64,000 nucleotides of DNA, taken from Rhodosorus marinus CCMP1338 (taxonomy: Eukaryota > Plantae > Rhodophyta). Each line of letters starts with the position of its first letter. Within the stretch, counting starts at the first letter, position 1. Made by a program: the position numbers and the translations under genes. The stretch is from the NCBI GenBank assembly GCA_029953675.1, contig JAMWBK010000002.1, forward strand, positions 310,001-374,000. Direction: 5' to 3'. Below are positions 5,084 through 58,339 of this stretch, piece after piece. The notes below the pieces were generated by a model that had not been told where the DNA came from, did not search any database, and saw only the letters and a program-made list of their open reading frames with translations.

Positions 5084-5653
5084 ACCGAAATATCCACTCA
5101 GCCTGCGAGCAGAGCGACGGAAACTCTAACACGCCCCGATCAGCTACCAGACATCACGTCAGCCTTTATCCAATCAATAAGCAATATTACCAAGTACAGA
5201 TAACCCAGTTTCGATGCGCTCAATCCGCAAGCGCTGTTCAACTCTGTTCTATAACAGACCGCACGGCCTTCAGCTTGGAGTCAAGAAGACGCAATTCCAC
5301 AGCATATCGAGAAGACCTATTAACGATAAGATCCCTTTTCCTCTCAACCACCAACCACAATCCGAATCTCGTCCTGGGAAAGCCTTCGATACCGTTGTCA
5401 TTCCTGACTTCAAAGAAACGAAAGGATAAGGACTCTGGAGGACGCTACCCCGGACAGAAAACAAATGGCTCACAAGCGTCTTCAAACTTTGTTTGTTTTT
5501 GATCAATCACGTCAACTTAGACAGGGCTTCAACTGCGGCGGTCGCGAGAGATTAAACTTACTTAGCCCGCCCCCCCCCCCGCCCCTTAAGCCTCACTAAT
5601 TCCATTTACGAAAAGAACTTTAGAACAAATAAACTGTTCCACAGCTCCACAAT

Positions 5654-5711
5654 CCATTATCCATTAAGCTCCATATATAACCCCATTATCCATTAAGCTC
5701 CATATATAAAC
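5654..5711. repeat. 29-bp tandem duplication CCATTATCCATTAAGCTCCATATATAA(C/A)C in AT-rich intergenic island
   Basis: Two adjacent copies at 5654-5682 and 5683-5711. Confidence 0.95.
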
Positions 5712-6672
5712 CCTACGACAATATATAACTCAATCGCATCCATCGCGCAATACAAATGTATTCACGTCCGTACTAATTAATTAAGCCCAAAAAATATATA
5801 TATACAACAACCCCTTGTAAAAACACGTTTCCAAACAAACATAAATAATATATTAATAAAATACACTATTCAATCCAAAACGATAAGAAGTTTCTACCCC
5901 CTCCCCCCTAGACCACATCCATTTTCTAATGGGTGGGGTACCTCAAGCTTACACATCTATTTTATATATTGGTACTAATTTATCTGTACTTGGTAATATT
6001 GCTTATTGATTGGATAAAGGCTGACGTTCAGTCAAAATTAAACCGTTAAAAATAGAATTTATAAAGTTTAGTTTATAATTTTGGGGGTTATTGCCTGACT
6101 TAAAAGTTGCGTTTTTTTGGAAGGGTGGGTTGGAGCTTATGAGGTGAGGGGGGGGGGGGCGTGAGATATATCTTCTGCAAATATGGAATCGTATTTTAGT
6201 GTTTTTATTGAATAAAAACGTGATTTCTCGACGAACTAAGATACGGTATCTCGGCAAGGGGGGTAGATTCTAGGTGACGCTTATGATCGCATATAAATTT
6301 TTAAAGATAGTAAATATAAAATTTATTTACCGGAATAGAGCTAATTTTATGGTTTATTTGGGGCATTTTGGATTTGTCGTGGAAGGAAGATTTTGGAGAT
6401 GAAATTTGAGTTAGTGTCACTCTTTGGGGTTGAGGTTTGGGCTTACGGCTGGAAGACAGTTCGATGGGTTGGGGTACTTAAGGGGAGTATGGAGGAGTGG
6501 GTTTGAAGATGGCCTAGTAGATGGTCAGCACCCTTTTTTGGTTTTACCCTGTTAGATTCTTTGTTAGCAAGACTTTGGAGCTTTTTAGTTTGGAAGGTCT
6601 TCAGCTTGCTCTGAGATTTAAGACGGTGGTTTGGCGTGACGGTGTTTTTTTTTTTTTTGAGATATCTGAATC

Positions 6673-9061: not shown

Positions 9062-9470
9062 TTCTGCTATGAGCAGTTTGGTGAGAAAGCTCCCTTGCAA
9101 GCAAGAAGCCAAGTTTCCACATCACACCTACTGCTTGCTCAGCAAAGCCATCCAAGGAGGCAGTATTTCATCAGCGGACAAAAGCGAGCGAGCCTGAAGA
9201 AGAGGAGACTTTTTTCCTTGAGCATTCGGTGAGGAAAGCCTTCTGTCCAGCAAGGAGCCACCAGCTTGTCAAAGCACATCTACTGCTTAGCTCAGCAAAG
9301 CCATCCAAGAGAGGCATTATTACTCCAGCAGCGGACAAAGGCGAACCTGAAGGAGAGGAGACTTTCTTCTTTGAAGATTCGGTGAGGAAATCCTTCTGTC
9401 CAGGCAAGAAGCCCAAAGATGTCTGAAGAGGAAGATGAGATTTTCTTCTATAAGAATTTGGTCAGGAAGA
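9062..9470 (+). repeat. Degenerate ~150-bp tandem repeat (about 3 copies) with a frame-broken ORF
   Basis: ATTCGGTGAGGAAA.CCTTCTGTCCAG at 9224 and 9377 (period 153); GCTCAGCAAAGCCATCCAAG twice; more diverged copies near 9071 and 9430-9470. Confidence 0.8.
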
Positions 9471-24458: not shown

Positions 24459-25578
24459 CTACTTCGATGGTGGCGGATATGCCGGATACCCTCCTTGACC
24501 AGGCGGTGGTGCTGTTGGCCCCGGAGGTGGAGCTTGGCCAGGAGGCGGAGCCCCGGCTCCGGGCGGTTGTTGACCAGGTGGGGCTCCGTAGTATCCGCTT
24601 TGCGCGGGTGGCTGTTGACCGAAATATCCGCTCTGCTGCGGGGGTGCTTGTCCATATCCTCCTTGACCGGGGGGTGGTGGTCCATAGCCCCCCTGGCCCG
24701 GAGGTGGCGGTCCATATCCTCCCTGGCCCGGAGGCGGTTGTCCGTATCCTCCCTGGCCCGGAGGTGGTTGTCCATATCCTCCCTGACCTGGAGGCGCTGG
24801 CCCGTAACCCCCCTGCCCCGGAGGCGCATAACCACCTGCCGGCGGTACCCCGGGAGGAGGGTAGTACCCTCCTGGAGGTGGATAGCCACCTGGTGCGGGT
24901 GGATATCCCCCGCCCTGCGGCGGGTATCCAGCTTGCGGTGGGTATCCATAGGGTGCTTGACCTGGTTGCATTGGGTATCCGCCATATCCTGGAACTCCTG
25001 CTTTCGGTTCTGGTGTTCGAGAAGCACAAAAAAATGAATATCTTCGTTTAGCATATCATCCCGTACGAAAAGAAATATGGTAACAACAGTACCTTTCGCC
25101 CTCTTGTGGAGGACAACTTCAAGCCTAATCTCCCCTCCTGCCTTTCCCTTTTCCGTTCTCATCGCGTACCTAAAATTAATGAGAAGGCTCGTTAGACGTT
25201 GTACAACAGGCAGGCAGCTAGAATTTCTCTGAGCTTGGCGAAACAATCGCACCATTGGTTAACGGAGGCAGATTGCTTCCCAGGCTGGTTCAAATGGTTC
25301 AGATCTATATCTGTATAGGCGATCAGCCTGTCCTTTCCAATATTCTTATCCTTGACGTCGACTCTCAAATGCAAATGCGCCATCCCCGACTCCGGAACAT
25401 CGAACGAGAAATTCTGGTTCCATCTCGCCTTGGTTCCAGCCTCGTCCTTGACGGTCGTCATAACAACCCGATCAGTATACTTCATCCGAATCTCTACATA
25501 CGGATCTTGCCTTGAGAACCTTTCCTTATCAGGCATATGCCGAGCCTCAACAACGCAAACATCCATCCTCCCCGACAT
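24459..25578 (-). CDS. C2-domain protein with a long Pro/Gly/Tyr/Gln-rich tail, 3 exons
   Basis: MSGRMDVCVVEARHMPDKERFSRQDPYVEI..GTKARWNQNFSF..LRVDVKDKN..DRLIA (C2) |WYAMRTEKGKAGGEIRLEV| then a PPPGQGGYG-repeat tail ending PPPSK*. Confidence 0.9.
24651..24830 (-). repeat. Six 30-bp coding repeats encoding xPPGQGGYG(P/Q)
   Basis: Units start at 24651, 24681, 24711, 24741, 24771 and 24801. Confidence 0.95.
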
Positions 25579-26864: not shown

Positions 26865-27840
26865 TCAGGGCGGAGGGTAGTAACCAGACGGCGGAGGTGG
26901 ATACTGACCACCCTGCGCTGGATACCCTCCTTGACTAGGCGGCGGTGCTGTTTGTCCTGGAGGTGGATACTGACCACCATGTGCTGGATAACCTCCTTGA
27001 CCAGGTGGTGGTGCTGCATGTCCTGGAGGTAGAGCTTGCCCTGGATGCGGGGGGTATGCGGTGGGTATACAGTGTGCGGTGGGTATGCAGTATGCGGTGG
27101 GTATGCAGCATGCGGTGCGTATCCGGTTGGTGGTGAATATCCGTATGGTACTGGTTCTGGGTGTCCTGGTGACGCTCCAGCTCGTGGATCTTGAGGTTAG
27201 AATGGAAAAGACTTCTATCAGATAGCACGACAGCACTACCCTAAACCAACTGAATGGCAGCGAGTACTTACCATCATACTTCTTGCGCAGAGTGATTTCA
27301 ATAACCCCAGACTAATGCTGAATAAGAGCTAGTTCCACCCTACGACTCAAGTAGTAGTTAAAATACCTACGAGTAAGTACAATGCGTTTAGGGAAAACAT
27401 GGCGTCACGCACCTCTGAGTGAGATACTGTGATGCGTTGATTAAAAGAGAGAGCGTGAGAGAGAGTAAGTAACGCTGGACATGCCCTTTTAGCCTCCGCA
27501 CAAAACAAATTCCAGGGGTATGTTGTCTTGCGATTGGTTTTGCAAACTGTAGTGCACGATCTCCTTACCGTCTGAAAGTTGAATGCTGAGATGCGGTACT
27601 GAGCTGGCAATCAACCTCGCCCCAGCGCGGCTCAAGCGTGCTGCGCCAAACATCCCGTAGCGTTTGTTCGGCTGACTGAAAAGCCAGTGCTGAGGTGTGG
27701 GATCTGCTGAACCGATTTCAGCAGTCGTGATGTTGGGATTAGCTAGGCAAACTGTCTTAATGTCCTTCTCCCCTTCTGAAGGATGCACGCTGAGTAGCCC
27801 GGTCCATGCCGTAAAAACCCATGCAGAACTGCAAATCAAC
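26865..27840 (-). pseudogene. Diverged tandem paralog of the C2/Pro-rich gene, frameshifted as assembled
   Basis: Same exon layout (..SGVIEITLRKKYD G|intron|DPRAGASPG vs GGEIRLEVVLHKRAK G|intron|EPKAGVPG) and same PPPGQGGYP tail; frame changes at the G6 run 27049-27054; in-frame TAG at 27312-27314; 5' end uncertain. Confidence 0.65.
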
Positions 27841-41011: not shown

Positions 41012-42001
41012 CTACTCCGCGGCAGGCACAGTAGTACGAATGTAAGGCTTTCCGGAGGGCAGATCGACAGTCTTGAACCCTGGGAATTTCTCTTCTGCAG
41101 CTTCGCTGCTGACTGATGGCAAAATGACACATTCCCTGTTTCGACGCGGAAGGATAAGATAAGAGTTAGCCACGAGATCGGGTTTGAACAAGCCCTTGGC
41201 ATGATGATAGCTTACTCTCCTTGCATCCAATCGCATGGAGTTGCCAGGCTTTGAGTGGCAGTGACCTGCAAGGAATCGATGACCCGAATAATCTCCGTGA
41301 AGTTCCTTCCTGTGCTAGCTGGGTAGAGAAGACTGAGCTTGAGCTTCTTATCAGGGCCAATGATGAATACAGCTCGAACTGTCATCGCCATTCCCTTCGC
41401 GTCCACTGGTCCACCCTGCAGGAGAAAGCACAGATCTTCAGCCTTCAATTCGCTTGTCGCACAGTTAACACAGTTAAACGGGTTGGTCATACCGATGCTG
41501 GAATCATGCCGAGGGCCTTGGCAAGAACACGAGTTGGATCAGCGATGATCGGATAGCCGACATCGGTGTTGGCGTAGCTGTTGATGTCCGGAATCCACTC
41601 TCGGTGGCTGGCGACGTCGTTGCAGGATACAGCAAGAACTTTGACCTATCGGAAAGAGTAGGAGGTACGAGCATTAGTACCAGGGTATGAAATTTGTAAA
41701 GCCAGGGATCCGCAGCTTACGTTGCGTTTCTCGAATTCTGGCACGAGCTGAGATAGACGTCCGAGCTCAGTGGTGCACACGGGGGTAAAATCAGCAGGAT
41801 GAGAACAGAGCATCGCCCAACTATCGCCGATCCACTTATGGAAAGACGGGATCGATCCAGTCTATTACAAAACAATAAAACAACAAGCACAAACATTTTC
41901 AGTTACTGAGCTCCTTCACTCAACCCGAAAATAGGCCCCGCAGACTACCATACCGAAGTCTCACAAGAAAAGTCAGGAAGCGTCTCCCCAAGCAACACCA
42001 T
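41012..42001 (-). CDS. PRDX6: 1-Cys peroxiredoxin (Prdx6 family), multi-exon
   Basis: MVLLGETLPDF; WAMLCSHPADFTPVCTTELG; TVRAVFIIGPDKKLKLSLLYPASTGRNFTEIIRVIDSLQ; ATPCDW; LPSGKPYIR. Confidence 0.96.
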
Positions 42002-42630
42002 CGTTGAGCAGCAGAAATTAAACAAACAAACGCAGCAGAACCCAAACGACACAAAAAAAAATAAAAACACAGACGATCAAACAGACACACACCAGAATCT
42101 TCAAAATCTAACGTCCCAGTAACTCATCCAGCTACCCCTGCCTCCATCCCCCATCCTCATCCCCCCGCCCCCCTGCCCCTCCCTTTCCCTATATACCCTT
42201 TCCTACCCAATCCCCTAAACCTATCCGCCACGAGCACAAAACCCCACAATTTCTCACCCTTCCTGTCATACGTCATGAAAGCAAACTCAAACACCCAAAA
42301 ATGCCAACTTTCCAAGAAAAATACAACAAATCTACAATTATTGTTGAAAAATCAAACATATAATATCTCAATCCTCTTCAAAATTTCCCCAAAACAATTT
42401 CTACCTTCGGTGTACAATAGGATATTCTCCAATTCTATGATACTCCTCAGAAACAACAGATTTTCAAGAGTCTGTCAATCCAGCCAACCCTTTTTTTGAT
42501 TGCTTTGCGAGAGAGGAAGTGGTCTCCCAGAACTTCCAACTCTCGCACTACTTAGAGTCAAATGGCGCGCTCGGGTGGGTGTGGGTGTCTTAGGAGGGGG
42601 AAAAGGGAATCGCAAGTGTGAGTGTGTGGG

Positions 42631-42773
42631 CTCTGTGGTTTACTGGAAGGTACTGTCTGACTCTATGGTTTACTGGAGGTTTTACTGGAAAAGTGAAAGC
42701 CGCGAGGTGGATCCTAATGAGAGGGAAAGGGGTGTAGGCAAGGGTAGGTGTTGCTCTGTGGTTTACTGGAAGG
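42631..42773. repeat. Three copies of a 20-bp motif CTCT(G/A)TGGTTTACTGGA(A)GG in a G-rich tract
   Basis: Copies at 42631, 42661 and 42754; partial TTTACTGGAA at 42681; degenerate copy near 42985-43016. Confidence 0.85.
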
Positions 42774-43350
42774 CGCTGTAAGGCTGGCTAGTTCCGGAGG
42801 CCGCGCTCTCTGCGATCTTTCTAGTGTAGACCTCCAAACAACAGATTTTTTTTAATGGTATACCAATGCTACAAAATTTCACCGGCTGAAAGATAGCACT
42901 TCATTTGAGCGGATGCGTGCTAGGAGAGGGAAACTGGAATCGAATGTGTGTGTATGTGTGGCTCCCTCTCGTATAAAGCAAGGCTCTGTAAGGTTTGGCT
43001 TAGCTCTGGAAGGCGCGTTCTCTGCAGCCCTTCCTGCGTAGTACCTAATTCGCGGACCTTGGTCACGGATGAAAGCTATCTGGCTACCTTCCAGCAGAAC
43101 CCACGCCCGGAAAATTAAATTCAAATAAAATCCACCGAACGTCCCCTTTTTATTCGTTGCCGTCTTCCGTCAGCTAAATATCATTAGCAGGCGGCATCGT
43201 TCGTAACCAATCAAACAATAGTTCCTAAAGAACGTATATAATACTTAACAAAACAAGCAAACGGCACAGTACAACTCCTTCTTAGCTAAAAATATAAAAA
43301 CATACATTAATCAATCAGAAAAAGATGCTTAGAATTAGGGTTGTCTAGGT

Positions 43351-43476
43351 TGTCATAAAACGTCCGATAATTGTTTTTTTGCAATGGCCATACAATATAT
43401 TGAATATACAAAGAAAAATAACTTTTAAGCCAATATTTGTTTGCGCGTCCTTTTTGTTATCGGACGTTTTAGGACA
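43351..43476. mobile_element. Foldback/MITE-like module 1 with 20-bp terminal inverted repeats (TGTCATAAAACGTCCGATAA)
   Basis: 43351-43370 pairs with 43457-43476 at 19/20; AT-rich interior; no target-site duplication seen. Confidence 0.55.
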
Positions 43477-44182
43477 AAACTATTTAGATTGAATACAGTC
43501 GTTTTTTGTTAAATATTGATTTATGTGCATATTATTTATGAAAACTTGGTTTAGGCTGTTGCAGTCAGTGTGGGAATTGCTAGGGGCTTATTTTCTTCGC
43601 TTTTTTGTCTTCCAACCGATTGCTAAGAGGGAGTGGGAGGTGGGCGGGGGGGGCGAGTGGGACGTTGCCTGCCTTCTTTACATTTTCTCTACCGGTTACA
43701 AACTGACTGCTAGTTTAGTTCTAATTGGGACGAAGGTTTCTCTTCAAATGGAGATATATGTAGTTCCTTTTTCTCGGAGAACCCTGTTCCAGAGCTCTAG
43801 TCTATCTGTGTTCTTGGTGGTATTCATCTTTTCAGCGTCAGCGTCCCCTTTTAACCACCACCACTGAACTGAGCGTTCACTATTAGTCTACGCGTGGCAA
43901 TCATTATTTTCATGGCCTCTCCTATCTCTTGTGGGAAATCGCCCTCCCCTTATCGGCGAGGTAAGCAACAGCGACATATTAGAATAACGACAGATACTGT
44001 AACCGGATCTGAAAGGCAGCTGAATTTCTCCGAAAACCCTGGATTTTTGATCTTGCTGGTGATAGAAACTCTATCCAAAGTTGACCGCTACGAGATCGGT
44101 CTTAATCCCCCAATATTTGGCGTACATTGCTCAGGGATCCATATAGAATACCTGCAAGCTTACAATCGGCGCTTCGAATCAT

Positions 44183-44660
44183 AGGAAACCTCCGAGACTG
44201 GCCCTTCCTCCCCAGCGATCTCACCCCGTGCGATAAACACCCACCCAGTCGCAGTAAACTGATCGAGGACGGAGAGCTTCCGGATCCCATGGAGGAACTC
44301 CACACTCCGTGAGATCTCACTGAAGAATAATTTCTGCAACCTACTTTTCCGGACCTCCACTTCCAGCTTCTACCTTTTGCACAACCACACAACGGGCGGC
44401 ACTACCTAAATACCGCCCTCTGATCAACACCGCTGGAAGCATCCAGCTGGAATGTCGATCATAGGGCTATCAATCCGCGGGTTTACTGACAGCCTTTGGC
44501 TACACGCGTTCCCACGGAAATACGATCAGCAGTTCTTATCTTCTCACTACGCAATATGTCAAATTCCACTGGATCAGTCTTGGCATCTTGGCCCTATAGC
44601 TTACTGACCACAACTCCCTTGCCCACACCAAAGCCTGCTCGCCATCGCTCAATCGAACCC
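44183..44660 (-). repeat. Left arm of a ~1.3-kb imperfect palindrome; inverted copy of the LRR gene 5' region
   Basis: Reverse complement of 45029-45461; exon-equivalent 44245-44369 differs from 45274-45398 at 9 of 125 nt with no indels; ~40-bp insertion near 44595-44632. Confidence 0.92.
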
Positions 44661-44739
44661 CATCCGAACGGGCGCGCGATAGGAATGAGTGATATCAACA
44701 TTTAGTACAAATGTACAACGTGTTACCTATAACTAGGAT

Positions 44740-44966
44740 TGTCATATTTCGTCCGATAAAGAATCTTAGTACAAGACGCACTAGTACATATCATAGAATA
44801 AACAAAGAAAATTGGAGTTCGGGCCACGAAAACTTTTGAAAAACTCTGTCTAAATAAGCAGTCCGTAATTAGGTATTTTTCGAAAGTTTTTCATTCTCTC
44901 ATGCTCGAAGTTTCTTCGTTTATGTGATATTATGCGAAGAAATGCTTTATCGGACGTTTTATGACA
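44740..44966. mobile_element. Foldback/MITE-like module 2 with the same TIR family, inside the palindrome spacer
   Basis: 44740-44761 pairs with 44945-44966 at 19/22; 44947-44966 is the exact reverse complement of 43351-43370; internal inverted repeat near 44828-44843/44877-44892. Confidence 0.55.
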
Positions 44967-45028
44967 CATCGCGCCTATATCTGAGAGTGTGAGACGATAG
45001 CTCAATAGCTAGCTTCTCCGACCCATCG

Positions 45029-45461
45029 GTTCCATAGAGCGATGGCGAGGAGGCCAAGATGCCAAGATTGATCGAGTGGAATTTGGCGTATCGTGTAGTC
45101 AGAAGATAAGAACTGCTGGTCGTTTCCGTGTGAACGCGTGGAGCCAAAGACTGTCAGTAAACCCACGGATTGATAGCCCTCTGATTGGCATTCAAGCTGC
45201 ATGCTTCCAGCGGTGTTGATCAGAGGGCGGTATTTAGGTAGTGCTGCAAGTTGTGTAACCGTGTAGAAGGTAGAAGCTGGAAGTGGAGATCCGGAAAAGT
45301 AGATTGCAGAAATTATTCTTCGGTGAGATCTCACGAAGTGTGGAGTTTCTCAATGGGATCCAGAAGCTCTCCGTCCTCGACCTGTTTACTGCGACTGGGT
45401 GGGTTGTTTGTTCCTAGGGGTGTGATCGCTGGGGAGGAAGCGGCAGTCTCAGAGGTTTCCT
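45029..45461 (+). repeat. Right arm of the palindrome, overlapping the LRR gene 5' end
   Basis: Inverted counterpart of 44183-44660. Confidence 0.92.
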
Positions 45462-46715
45462 CTTAGCAAAACAGGTTGGCAACTTCTGCTCGTTTGCTTG
45501 TATAGTCTTTGGCAACGTGGACAAAGGGCGCGCAAGCCATTTCAAGTTTCCTGGGGAGGTCGAATGGACGCTTCACAATTGTTCGATACTCTGAAAAGCT
45601 TTGACCAGGCCGAAGAGGGGGCGCCAGCGCATCCAGAGTACGTGAGGTGACTTGCAGGCCGTCATTAAGATGCTCTGAAATTTGATAACTGCTGACGAAC
45701 TTCGTATTTTGATTTCAACAGCCCAGAGCCCGACTTCCGTGCTCGAATATTTTCCGCTCGTAGCGACGGAACGAATCGTCTGGATCTCAGTAATCTGGAT
45801 TTGTCGGATGCATCTCTGTGCACTTTACTAGATGCGATTGGGAGTGTTGAAAAGCATGTGCAGGTCGTTGACATGTCAATGAATTTTCTCACGGGCTCCC
45901 CTCAAGACAACCCCGGATGTGAAGCTGGAACCGGATTTGCCAATAAGTTTCCAGATGTTCAGTCCTTGGATCTCTCCGGGAATAGCTTAACTTCTATTCC
46001 AGGGTTCGTGACGGCCTTTCGGAACCTCAAGGTAGGTTTGCAGCGTCATTGAAAGCGATGTGAACATCGTGAATCGGAGGAGTCGCATACACACTCCAGT
46101 CCTCTAAGCACTTCCGGGGTCACCCAAACGATCATGCGGGAACAATGCCAGAGGCAGTATACTGGAGCCTACTACTACTCCAAAGCTACTGGAGTTGCCA
46201 ACCCGCTCGTTGGTCAGTTTTGGATAAACTGCGTTCCTAACAAACCGCTGTCGGTATACTGTAGGAGATTGACGTTTCAGATAACAGCTCCTTGGCAATT
46301 TTCGATACCTCAGTGCTTCCGAAGAGCGTCCGCCACGTCTACGCAAGAAATTGTGCTCTTACAAAGTTTCCTGAGCCGCTCGATGCTCTGCCGGGGACCT
46401 CTGTACTACAGCTTTCCGGGAACAGAATCTGTACTGTGCCTGGGGATATCGGTGCGTTCCAAGAGAGTTCTCCTTCACGCACTGCACCCGTCGTCATATC
46501 TGACCAACATCAATCGTACAGGAGAGCTGGAGAACCTAGTGTACCTTAACATAAGCGACAATGAGATAGAAAATCTCCCTGATGAGGTTGCCGAAGCGGA
46601 TCAACTAAGAGCGCTGGTTTTGTATCGAAATCGACGGCAGTATGGGTACTCCACAGATCTGAACGAGTTCTTTAGCTCCCGCGATGCTCTAAGGAGTGAT
46701 CAACCAGCCCTCTGA
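45274..46715 (+). CDS. Leucine-rich-repeat protein, multi-exon, start uncertain (45274 exon or ATG 45564)
   Basis: RLDLSNLDLSD, VQVVDMSMNFLTG, VQSLDLSGNSLTSIPG, VLQLSGNRICTVPGDI|GELENLVYLNISDNEIENLPDEV, LRALVLYRN. Confidence 0.8.
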
Positions 46716-46830
46716 GTATGCAGACTTACCCAGTAGCTGATGGATGTTCATAAAGCAGAATTATTTAACAAGTTACATAATCCAACGCATTGATGGAGTA
46801 GGCGATGCCAATATCTGTACAATGAGCTGT

Positions 46831-49646
46831 TCATTCTGTCCTGAAAAAACCATTACTCAGCTCGACTAACCAATGCTTCTCGATCTCGAGAGCAGTTCGG
46901 ACGTAGCTCCTAGTAGTCAGTATTAGTTCATGAAATATAATTAGAGCCGGCCTCTTCCGGAGTCCACGGAGGCAGGAGGACGGGTGAATATCAACTTCGA
47001 CACCACCGGTAAGCCCCCTCGTGCTGCCATAAGCTACGTATTTTTTGTCCTCTGAGCGTAAGTACGCGGCGTTACGAAAGTAACCGGCGACGAGGCTCAT
47101 CCGCACAGCATCTAGGAGATCACCTTCAAGCTCCCTTTCGTCGACACCGACTGCATTAACACCGCCAAGCAAGTCTTCGATCTGCTTCCTGATGTTCTGA
47201 GCTGCGAGCATACTCCTTTTCCAGGACCGAACAGAGGAAGGGTCCAAGTCCATTAGAAGCGCAAGCACCTTCAGTGACCATGCAGCTCAAGAAATTCCAA
47301 AGGAACTCAAAAAAGGAGTGTGCCTCGTGCTAACCTGACATTGAGGAAATATTTCCTGCAAAATTGTGATCTGTTCTCTGATTCAAGCTTTTCAAAAGAT
47401 TTGTAGGCGAAGTACAAGCTAATGTGGTCCCCGTACGGTGAGGCAAACTTTTTCCTGGACCCTGCAGCTTCGTCCCGTTTCCCTCTTGGGGAAAGAAAGG
47501 GAGACTGCGAAGCAGTTGACCTCAGTTCAGATCCCCGAGCAGCTCCCGCTCAGTTTGGTTCGCTACCCCTTACCTCAACAGTTAGCATTGCAGCCAAAGT
47601 AAGCATCTGTGGGAGGCAATTAGACCTCTTGGCTTCTAAAGTCGACCTAGCCAGCATCGGGGGTAGAGGCAAGGAGCTCATGGTCTTTCCTAATTCGGTA
47701 AGTCCCATCTGCTCATCTACAGCCGACAATGAAAACAAAAGCTCAAGCGCATTGGCGACAGCCTTTTTAGGAGGGGGATCAATGAATTCGAATTTGAACG
47801 GGTTTCCTAAAGGAGAAAATGGACATAGAATGGAGCGCAGAATTCAGCGGCCGGAAACTGGTGGCACCGTAAAGGGAAAGTTGCAGAGAAACGTGTACGT
47901 ACCTATTCCCATCGCCAGGAGGTGAAGGATTGCAGAAGCAAGATCGCAGCGAAGAATTTCCGGAATTGGATGATCTTCCATTTTGTGGTAGTCGTCCTCA
48001 ACATATAGCCGGAAACACTTCCCTGAGTACCGAGAAACGTCAGACTTTGAATTTTTAGGGTCCAAGTTGGTGTTGACTCGAATAGCAAGAAGAATTTGAG
48101 GAATCCAGACCTGGTGACTCCCTCCCCGCGCGACCAGCCCTTTGACGAGCTTGGCTTTTAGATACAGGACCCACGCGCAGAATATCTGCTCCTGTTCTCA
48201 GATTGACAGTTCTTGATTTCGCTACGCCCGTGTCAATTACATATTTTACATTCCTTATGGTGATGCTGGTTTCCGCAACGTTTGTCGCGAACATGACCTT
48301 TAGTACAAGTAAAAGCGCACATGTCAGTTTCGCCAACGTATGTACCCGCCTTCACGAGTACCCACCTTTCTGCTGTGATGTCTTTGTCCAGGTGGAAGAG
48401 GTTCTATGGCCGCCATCTGCTCATCGGACGGCAGTGCAGCGTAAAGAGGCCTGGCAACAAGCGTAGCCAACTTGTGGCCGTTAGCACGCAACTTCGTTAT
48501 TCGACTTTCTAGTATGCTTATCGCAGCATCGATTTCCTCCTGCCCAGTCAAGAATACTAGGATATCTCCCGGCATCGATTCGTCCGTGTGCACCTGCCCC
48601 AAAGAAGAACCAACCCGACTGGTGAGCAGCGGTTGGACACCAGCTCCTATTGTCCACGAATTATACCTGCAACGTGGCAGTGATTGCTCCATCAAGGTAG
48701 TCGCTCACTGGTTCACCAGCGAACATCATTTCTATTGGAAACGTACGCCCAGGTACAGTTACCACTTCGACAATGGAGCCCTTGTTGTAAAACCTGGCGC
48801 AAGAGGCACATTCTAATAAACGACAAACACGGCAGAGCAAAAAACAGTTCACGGAACATACTTCCTCAATCCATCAATATCGGGTGTCGCGGACATTACA
48901 ATTAGTTTCATTGAACCTCTTCGAACTGCCAGAGCCTGTTTGGATATGCCTAGGAGAACGTCTGTGCTTATCGATCTCTCGTGGACCTCATCGATTACAA
49001 CGACGGCTATATACAGCCACTTCAATCAGATAGGCTGTTGACTCCGCTTACAGAACAACTGAATTTCGCACGTGATGCGTACCATAATTAGATAAGACTT
49101 GGTCCTCGAGCGCTTCACGCATGAGGATTCCGTCAGTCGCATACTTGAGCCTGGTTCTGTGGGTTGTACAGTCATCGAATCTGACAGCGTAGCTCACTTC
49201 ATCGCCAAGGCGGCATCCACGTTCAGTAGCGACCCTACTGGCTACGGACATCGCTGCTACTCTTCGAGGTTGAGTGACTGCAACAAGCTTCCCTTTCAAG
49301 CCCCAGTCATCGTCCAGGATCATTTGCGGAACCTGGACGCGCACGACAATGCATTCAGACCTTCAAACAGTAGCTTCTGCTTGTTTCCAAGTCCAGGGCG
49401 AGGCTGCAATTCAAGCGAATGAACGAACAGACCAAACCCCTAAATGAGCATAGAAATCTATACTAAAGGCGACGGACTAACCTGAGTAGATTTGCCGCTA
49501 CCAGTATCCCCGACGAGTATCAGCACATCGCTCCTCGCAAAAGCTCTAAGGATTTTGCTGCGTGCAAACTGAACCGGTAACTTTCCCTTTCGATCGCGAT
49601 GGCCATCATTCCTATCTGAGCCCTCGAGAACTCGTTTTTGTCTCAT
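46831..49646 (-). CDS. DEAH/RHA RNA helicase, DHX33/Prh1-like, multi-exon
   Basis: GDTGSGKSTQ; TQPRRVAAMSVASRVA; YATDGILMRE; IDEVHERS; MSAT; DILVFLTGQEEID; FATNVAETSITI; QRAGRAGR; HA2/OB-fold tail (IHPSSCL..IIFHELILTTRSY). Confidence 0.93.
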
Positions 49647-58276: not shown

Positions 58277-58339
58277 TGTCCCAATTCCGTCATCCACGAT
58301 TTCTGTCCCAATTCCGTCATCCACGATTTCTGTCCCAAT
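58277..58339. repeat. 27-bp tandem repeat TGTCCCAATTCCGTCATCCACGATTTC x2 plus a 9-bp partial
   Basis: Exact copies at 58277-58303 and 58304-58330, then TGTCCCAAT. Confidence 0.95.

Follow-up and report, generated by a model that had tools for sequence, protein, structure and literature searches.

The window analysed here comprises 64,000 nucleotides of nuclear DNA from the red alga Rhodosorus marinus CCMP1338 (GCA_029953675.1, JAMWBK010000002.1, 310001-374000). One of its reading frames, a single exon of 363 aa, places it on this 3.48-Mb contig. Repeats make up 15% of the 31.2-Mb R. marinus assembly (PMC10250338); the published RepeatMasker table attributes 9% to CRE LINEs and 1.3% to LTR elements, lists 35 hAT fragments (0.03%) as the only DNA transposons, and leaves 4.03% (6757 pieces) unclassified (PMC10250338). 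Within the window, an unusually long intergenic region of 3.56 kb separates divergent genes for a peroxiredoxin and an LRR protein. Two short foldback modules, designated M1 and M2, sit inside this region, with M1 at 1350 nt from the ATG of the peroxiredoxin gene and the end of M2 598 nt before the LRR ATG. The features of the locus are as follows.

41015-42001, minus strand: 1-Cys peroxiredoxin-like gene, five exons (gene model proposed here)
43351-43476, plus strand: M1, 126-bp foldback, with a 20-mer at 43351-43370 and its inverted copy at 43457-43476 (19/20)
43399-43417, plus strand: subterminal motif ATTGAATATACAAAGAAAA of M1, matching 44793-44811 at 17/19 positions
43477-44182: segment of 706 bp between M1 and arm A'
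44183-45461: palindrome of 1279 bp, consisting of arms A' and B, 88-90% identical, and their spacer
44183-44659, minus strand: arm A', derived inverted copy of the LRR 5' flank
44660-44739: left part of the palindrome spacer, 80 nt
44740-44966, plus strand: M2, 227-bp foldback, with inverted repeats at 44740-44764 and 44942-44966 (21/25)
44793-44811, plus strand: left-half subterminal motif ATAGAATAAACAAAGAAAA of M2, matching the M1 motif at 17/19 positions
44967-45027: right part of the palindrome spacer, 61 nt
45028-45461, plus strand: arm B, parental copy, -536 to -103 from the LRR ATG
45564-46715, plus strand: LRR-repeat gene, several exons, Pfam LRR_1 and LRR_4

Transcription of the peroxiredoxin gene, whose ATG is at 42001, runs away from the modules. 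The LRR ATG at 45564 is also kept in a related alga, and the end of the LRR gene was set at the stop codon of the last clear reading frame; a DEAH helicase gene converges on this 3' end. The 706-bp segment is not repeated anywhere else in the window, and its open reading frames gave no Pfam match. An exact-protein look-up with three local reading frames found no identical protein on record, and a protein homologue search with the C-terminal frame of the helicase found no homologue.

The 20-mer TGTCATAAAACGTCCGATAA occurs at four sites: on the plus strand at 43351 (no mismatch) and 44740 (three mismatches), and on the minus strand at 43457 (one mismatch) and 44947 (no mismatch). Chance expectation is zero, as none of 100 dinucleotide-preserving shuffles contained a match. 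The three mismatches at 44740 form a single block in which AAA is replaced by TTT. The outer pair is complementary at 20/20 positions and spans 1616 bp (43351-44966). These results bear out the first-pass annotation, which had reported the four copies with these mismatches and a perfect outermost pair enclosing 1616 bp. ACGT and GATAA, which we take to be transcription-factor core motifs, both occur within the 20-mer. A literature search with a 10-mer returned unrelated Staphylococcus aureus and MRSA papers only.

Both modules are AT-rich, with a GC content of 31% in M1 and 34% in M2 compared with 44-53% in the flanks, and both fold strongly as single-stranded DNA. The predicted folding energy was -21.1 kcal/mol (z -4.7 against shuffled sequences) for M1, whose stem encloses a poorly paired 86-nt loop, and -39.2 kcal/mol (z -6.2) for M2. 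The latter is an imperfect palindrome from end to end, with 64% identity to its own reverse complement over 247 columns (blastn, E 5e-12). Its left and right 20-mer cores match the reference 20-mer at 17/20 and 20/20 positions, respectively, and the repeat extends to 25 nt. Neither module contains a meaningful reading frame, and no Pfam match was obtained with the local reading frames. M1 and M2 lie in the same orientation at a spacing of about 1.3-1.39 kb. Their nearly identical 20-mers bound interiors of unequal length, in which similarity over the first 70 nt is only about 68%. The subterminal motif lies 48 nt from the left repeat in M1 and 53 nt from it in M2. The earlier description of two foldback modules with a common interior motif holds. 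A third, weaker copy of the motif lies inverted in the right half of M2 (~44910-44928). M1 and M2 thus have the appearance of two MITE-like elements from a single family.

Alignment of the flanks revealed no 2-10 bp direct repeat at the TGT/ACA boundaries of M1, M2 or the 1616-bp unit, in agreement with the initial impression that target-site duplications are absent. When the boundaries were shifted by -3 to +12 nt, the only matches were CTA for M1 (+3/+3) and CCTATA for M2 (+8/+7), which are mutually inconsistent; the outer flanks of the 1616-bp unit have nothing in common at the boundary, and their sole match at an offset is a 3-mer. Because a CTAG(G)/CTAT-like string stands 1-3 nt outside the 20-mer at three of the four ends, the real terminus may lie a few bases beyond the 20-mer. 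Outward extension of the inverted repeat was also considered, since MAFFT aligned ~50 nt of flank; this similarity was not significant on shuffling. With 100-nt outer flanks, p was 0.62 for the left flanks of M1 and M2 and 0.02 for the best pair, the latter uncorrected for six tests. Recombinational inversion between M1 and M2 was rejected as an explanation for the absent duplications, because on inspection the flanks do not pair in reverse complement.

The TGT/ACA ends had earlier been taken as a hint of Ginger-type elements. Ginger ends follow the pattern TGTNR, which is common to Ginger and Gypsy LTR ends, and Ginger elements have terminal repeats of 40-270 bp and 4-bp target-site duplications, at CCGG/CCGT in Ginger1 and at RTATAY targets in Ginger2 (PMC2836005). 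As in Ginger1 and Ginger2 (Tdd), the terminal pentamer TGTCA at both ends of M2 and the left end of M1 fits this pattern, whereas the right end of M1 reads TGTCC and does not fit R at position five. Unlike in these elements, the terminal repeats of M1 and M2 are only 20-25 bp long, and the 4-nt flanks (AGGT/AAAC for M1, GGAT/CATC for M2) contain no 4-bp duplication of the CCGG/CCGT or RTATAY type. Ginger transposases resemble Gypsy integrases; no integrase-like transposase was seen here. A Ginger affiliation is not supported, the pentamer being its only point of agreement. Transposases of any kind were absent from the 64-kb window. Members of the hAT superfamily create 8-bp target-site duplications and have YARNG termini. 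No 8-bp duplication, even an imperfect one, was found at the modules, and their termini read TGTCA.

The palindrome lies between M1 and the LRR gene. Its arms are separated by a spacer of 368 bp that is occupied by M2 near the symmetry centre, and arm A' has an insertion of 39 nt at 44594-44632. An assembly artefact was ruled out as the source of the palindrome, because the arms are just 88-90% identical. The left and right parts of the spacer are neither homologous nor mirror images of each other (global p 0.67, local p 0.72), and fold-back priming from M2's own repeats was therefore rejected as the origin of the palindrome. Since reading frames upstream of the LRR ATG differ between R. marinus and its relative, we regard arm B as non-coding 5' flank, which may hold an untranslated 5' exon. 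The first-pass annotation had described an enclosed inverted copy of the 5' exon of the LRR gene; an inverted copy derived from this gene is indeed present, but its source is the non-coding 5' flank rather than a coding exon.

A protein query with an LRR exon identified one relative (P0001, 78% identity), encoded on the 1903-bp Logan contig L124 (SRR32518360). This contig aligns to positions 45270-47102 of the window with 83% nucleotide identity, LRR introns included. A close relative of R. marinus is thus present in these public reads, which could serve to compare empty sites here and at other loci. By contrast, a protein search with concatenated six-frame reading frames from 41.9-45.6 kb and the 5' part of L124 found no homologue. 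In a three-way alignment of the shared part of the arms, identity was 88% between A' and B and ~76% between either arm and L124. At 34 sites the two arms agree and differ from L124, while B has 10 private sites and A' nine. These counts indicate that the inverted duplication is younger than the split from the L124 relative and that both arms have drifted equally. In both species, homology runs from arm B into the LRR gene, while that of A' ends exactly at 44183, which identifies B as the parent. L124 reaches ~79 bp past its last aligned base, and this stretch matches nothing in 41.9-45.3 kb; because the contig stops before the site of M1 and M2, it has no bearing on their presence or absence in the relative.

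We next weighed how these features could have arisen. One proposal was that the entire interval 43351-44966 forms a composite or Pack-type transposon, in which the outer ends would move all the intervening DNA and, with it, a captured gene fragment. The perfect complementarity of the outer 20-mers, as against one and three mismatches in the inner ones, would fit such a unit, as would the enclosed copy of gene-flanking DNA, and inverted terminal repeats around a copy of this kind recall Pack-MULE and other Pack-type elements as well as IS-style composites. Several observations make it very unlikely. No 2-10 bp duplication flanks the unit, no second copy of its 1616 bp is known, and each of its two ends is a complete small element rather than the end of one element. 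Furthermore, the cargo comes neither from a different locus nor from a gene fragment: it is non-coding 5' flank rather than a coding exon, its parent lies immediately adjacent, 61 bp outside the unit, and copy and source together make a simple local palindrome. Of the original suggestion of two MITEs flanking cargo, the MITE-like size, composition and structure of the modules and their membership in one family therefore stand, whereas the composite or Pack-type unit does not, given the absent duplication and the local cargo.

Several further explanations concern the modules themselves. M1 and M2 might go back to one insertion, or one hairpin-forming sequence, of which a palindrome-type rearrangement made a local copy, rather than to two independent transpositions. 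An inverted duplication has demonstrably occurred in the region, and the modules share their orientation at a distance of 1.39 kb, lack target-site duplications and have the CTAG(G)/CTAT-like string outside three of their four ends. We nevertheless consider a local copy unlikely: the interiors, at ~68%, are far more diverged than the 88% identical arms, so that the copying event would have to be much older, at odds with the almost perfect 20-mers, and the similarity of the 100-nt outer flanks does not survive shuffling. Immobile 20-mers, acting as locus-specific protein-binding dyads or structural hairpins in a shared peroxiredoxin/LRR promoter region, would account for the position of the modules between divergent genes, for the ACGT and GATAA cores, for the far better conservation of the 20-mers than of the interiors, and for the lack both of target-site duplications and of other copies in 64 kb. 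This explanation, too, is doubtful, because half-sites 86 and 187 nt apart would be an unusual operator geometry, the AT-rich composition unlike that of the flanks gives the modules an inserted look, and a full-length foldback with a common subterminal motif is typical of MITEs. A further possibility, that M1 and M2 encode small hairpin RNAs such as precursors of siRNAs or of miRNA-like molecules, draws on their strong hairpins and on sub-threshold matches of the M2 centre to generic miRNA-precursor models (mir-70, 24 bits; MIR444, 22 bits). These scores fall far under the gathering scores of 90 and 110 bits (E 0.13-0.22), and the poorly paired loop of M1 is at odds with such a function; no Rfam family or tRNA was found at the modules, and no RNA family scored above threshold in the whole window. 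Hairpin-RNA genes are accordingly the least credible of these options. We also considered an origin of the modules in transferred mitochondrial DNA (NUMTs), since such transfers are abundant in R. marinus (PMC10250338), but the reported GC enrichment of the minicircles contrasts with the AT-rich modules.

In our preferred reading, to which we assign roughly even odds (about 0.5), M1 and M2 are non-autonomous, MITE-like foldback elements from one family of DNA elements with terminal inverted repeats, and the local palindrome is a separate feature. Four 20-mers far exceed chance, the modules are short, non-coding, AT-rich relative to GC-richer flanks and capable of forming strong single-strand hairpins, and the subterminal motif recurs at a similar offset in both. 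Near-identical ends combined with diverged interiors of unequal length point to different members of a MITE family rather than to a recent local copy. The 4% of unclassified repeats and the near absence of classified DNA transposons in R. marinus make an undescribed family plausible. Doubt arises from the absence of target-site duplications, of a further copy in 64 kb and of a transposase, and two copies 1.3 kb apart with none elsewhere in the window resemble a locus-specific feature.

If M1 and M2 are MITE-like elements, their conserved terminal repeat of 20-25 bp would be the recognition site for a putative transposase supplied by an autonomous partner, perhaps together with the subterminal GAATAAACAAAGAAAA motif. 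The palindrome presumably arose in a separate event: ~435-475 bp of the non-coding LRR 5' flank gave rise to an inverted copy 368 bp upstream of the original, later than the split of R. marinus from its nearest sampled relative, and M2 lies in the spacer. The repeats with their structure and composition, the palindrome and its relative age are direct results, whereas we infer mobility of the modules, a role of the 20-mer as transposase-binding site and independence of the three events. Two MITE-like elements and a local inverted duplication in one enlarged intergenic region provide the simplest account of the locus, and a new MITE-like family in a red alga next to an unrelated local palindromic duplication is probable. 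The position of M2 near the palindrome centre may nevertheless be non-coincidental. It is conceivable, if quite improbable, that M1 and M2 represent a new red-algal family of recombinogenic DNA elements with hairpin ends, which insert without target-site duplication. The presence, insertion or excision of M2 could then have triggered the LRR-promoter palindrome, such elements reshaping promoters locally, or the palindrome loop could have been a preferred structural target.

Under the preferred reading of two MITE-like elements and a separate duplication, each part has recognisable counterparts. The modules resemble MITEs in their length (126-227 bp, below the limit of 800 bp for such short non-coding elements), in terminal inverted repeats of 20-25 bp, in their AT-rich, non-coding foldback structure, in their location near genes and in combining conserved termini with variable interiors. 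They differ from MITEs in having no visible target-site duplication, and MITEs occur in many dispersed copies, whereas M1 and M2 are the only two in 64 kb. The palindrome, with its sharp breakpoints, arms of ~435-475 bp at 88-90% identity and a single-copy 368-bp spacer between them, resembles local inverted duplications of the replication template-switch or fold-back type. It departs from these in that a hairpin-forming element, M2, fills the spacer and is flanked by 80 and 61 nt that are not mirror images.

No further module copy or solo terminus was found in the 64-kb window beyond M1 and M2. Scans with the terminal repeat detected at least 120 loci in metagenomes, all of them single matches with no second inverted copy nearby, two loci in viral sequences, likewise single matches with no inverted partner nearby, and one chance match in prokaryote genomes. 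Because a 16-base pattern is expected at that rate, we attribute the metagenome and viral matches to chance as well. To our knowledge, few descriptions of MITEs from red algae exist. In R. marinus, hardly any class II transposons have been annotated: hAT fragments, the only ones, make up 0.03% of the genome, next to 4% of unclassified repeat. If the family is dispersed, M1 and M2 would give its termini and thereby a handle for its transposase and for sorting some of the unclassified repeats. The palindrome, for its part, is a datable duplication of a promoter region that took place later than the species split. Apart from these possible family termini and this datable duplication, the locus is ordinary intergenic clutter.

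The window contains several other repeats. Perfect inverted repeats of 48 bp (5156-5203 and 5980-6027, 100% complementary) form the ends of an 872-bp segment at 5156-6027, whose AT-rich interior contains a 29-bp tandem repeat at 5654-5713. Its sequence is unrelated to the 20-mer family, and with no obvious target-site duplication (flanks ...gacatc / tcagtc...) it represents a second inverted-repeat-bounded module without duplication in the window. Upstream of the peroxiredoxin gene, ~125-bp diverged direct repeats (TTAGGAGGGGGAAAAGGGAAT ... GCTCTGTGGTTTACTGGAAGG) lie at 42589-42779 and 42920-42940, with 75% identity over 69 nt, and a C-rich 24-mer (42161-42184) has a G-rich counterpart of the same length at 43628-43651, to which it is 88% complementary. 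On the minus strand at 24459-24971, 30- and 60-bp tandem repeats give rise to a proline-, glycine- and tyrosine-rich reading frame composed of PPGQGGYG units; a repeat array with 66- and 18-bp periods follows 2 kb from this frame, at 26893-27122. Two simpler arrays consist of 1.9 tandem copies of a 153-bp unit at 9123-9413, with 85% matches, and 2.3 perfect tandem copies of a 27-bp unit at 58277-58339.
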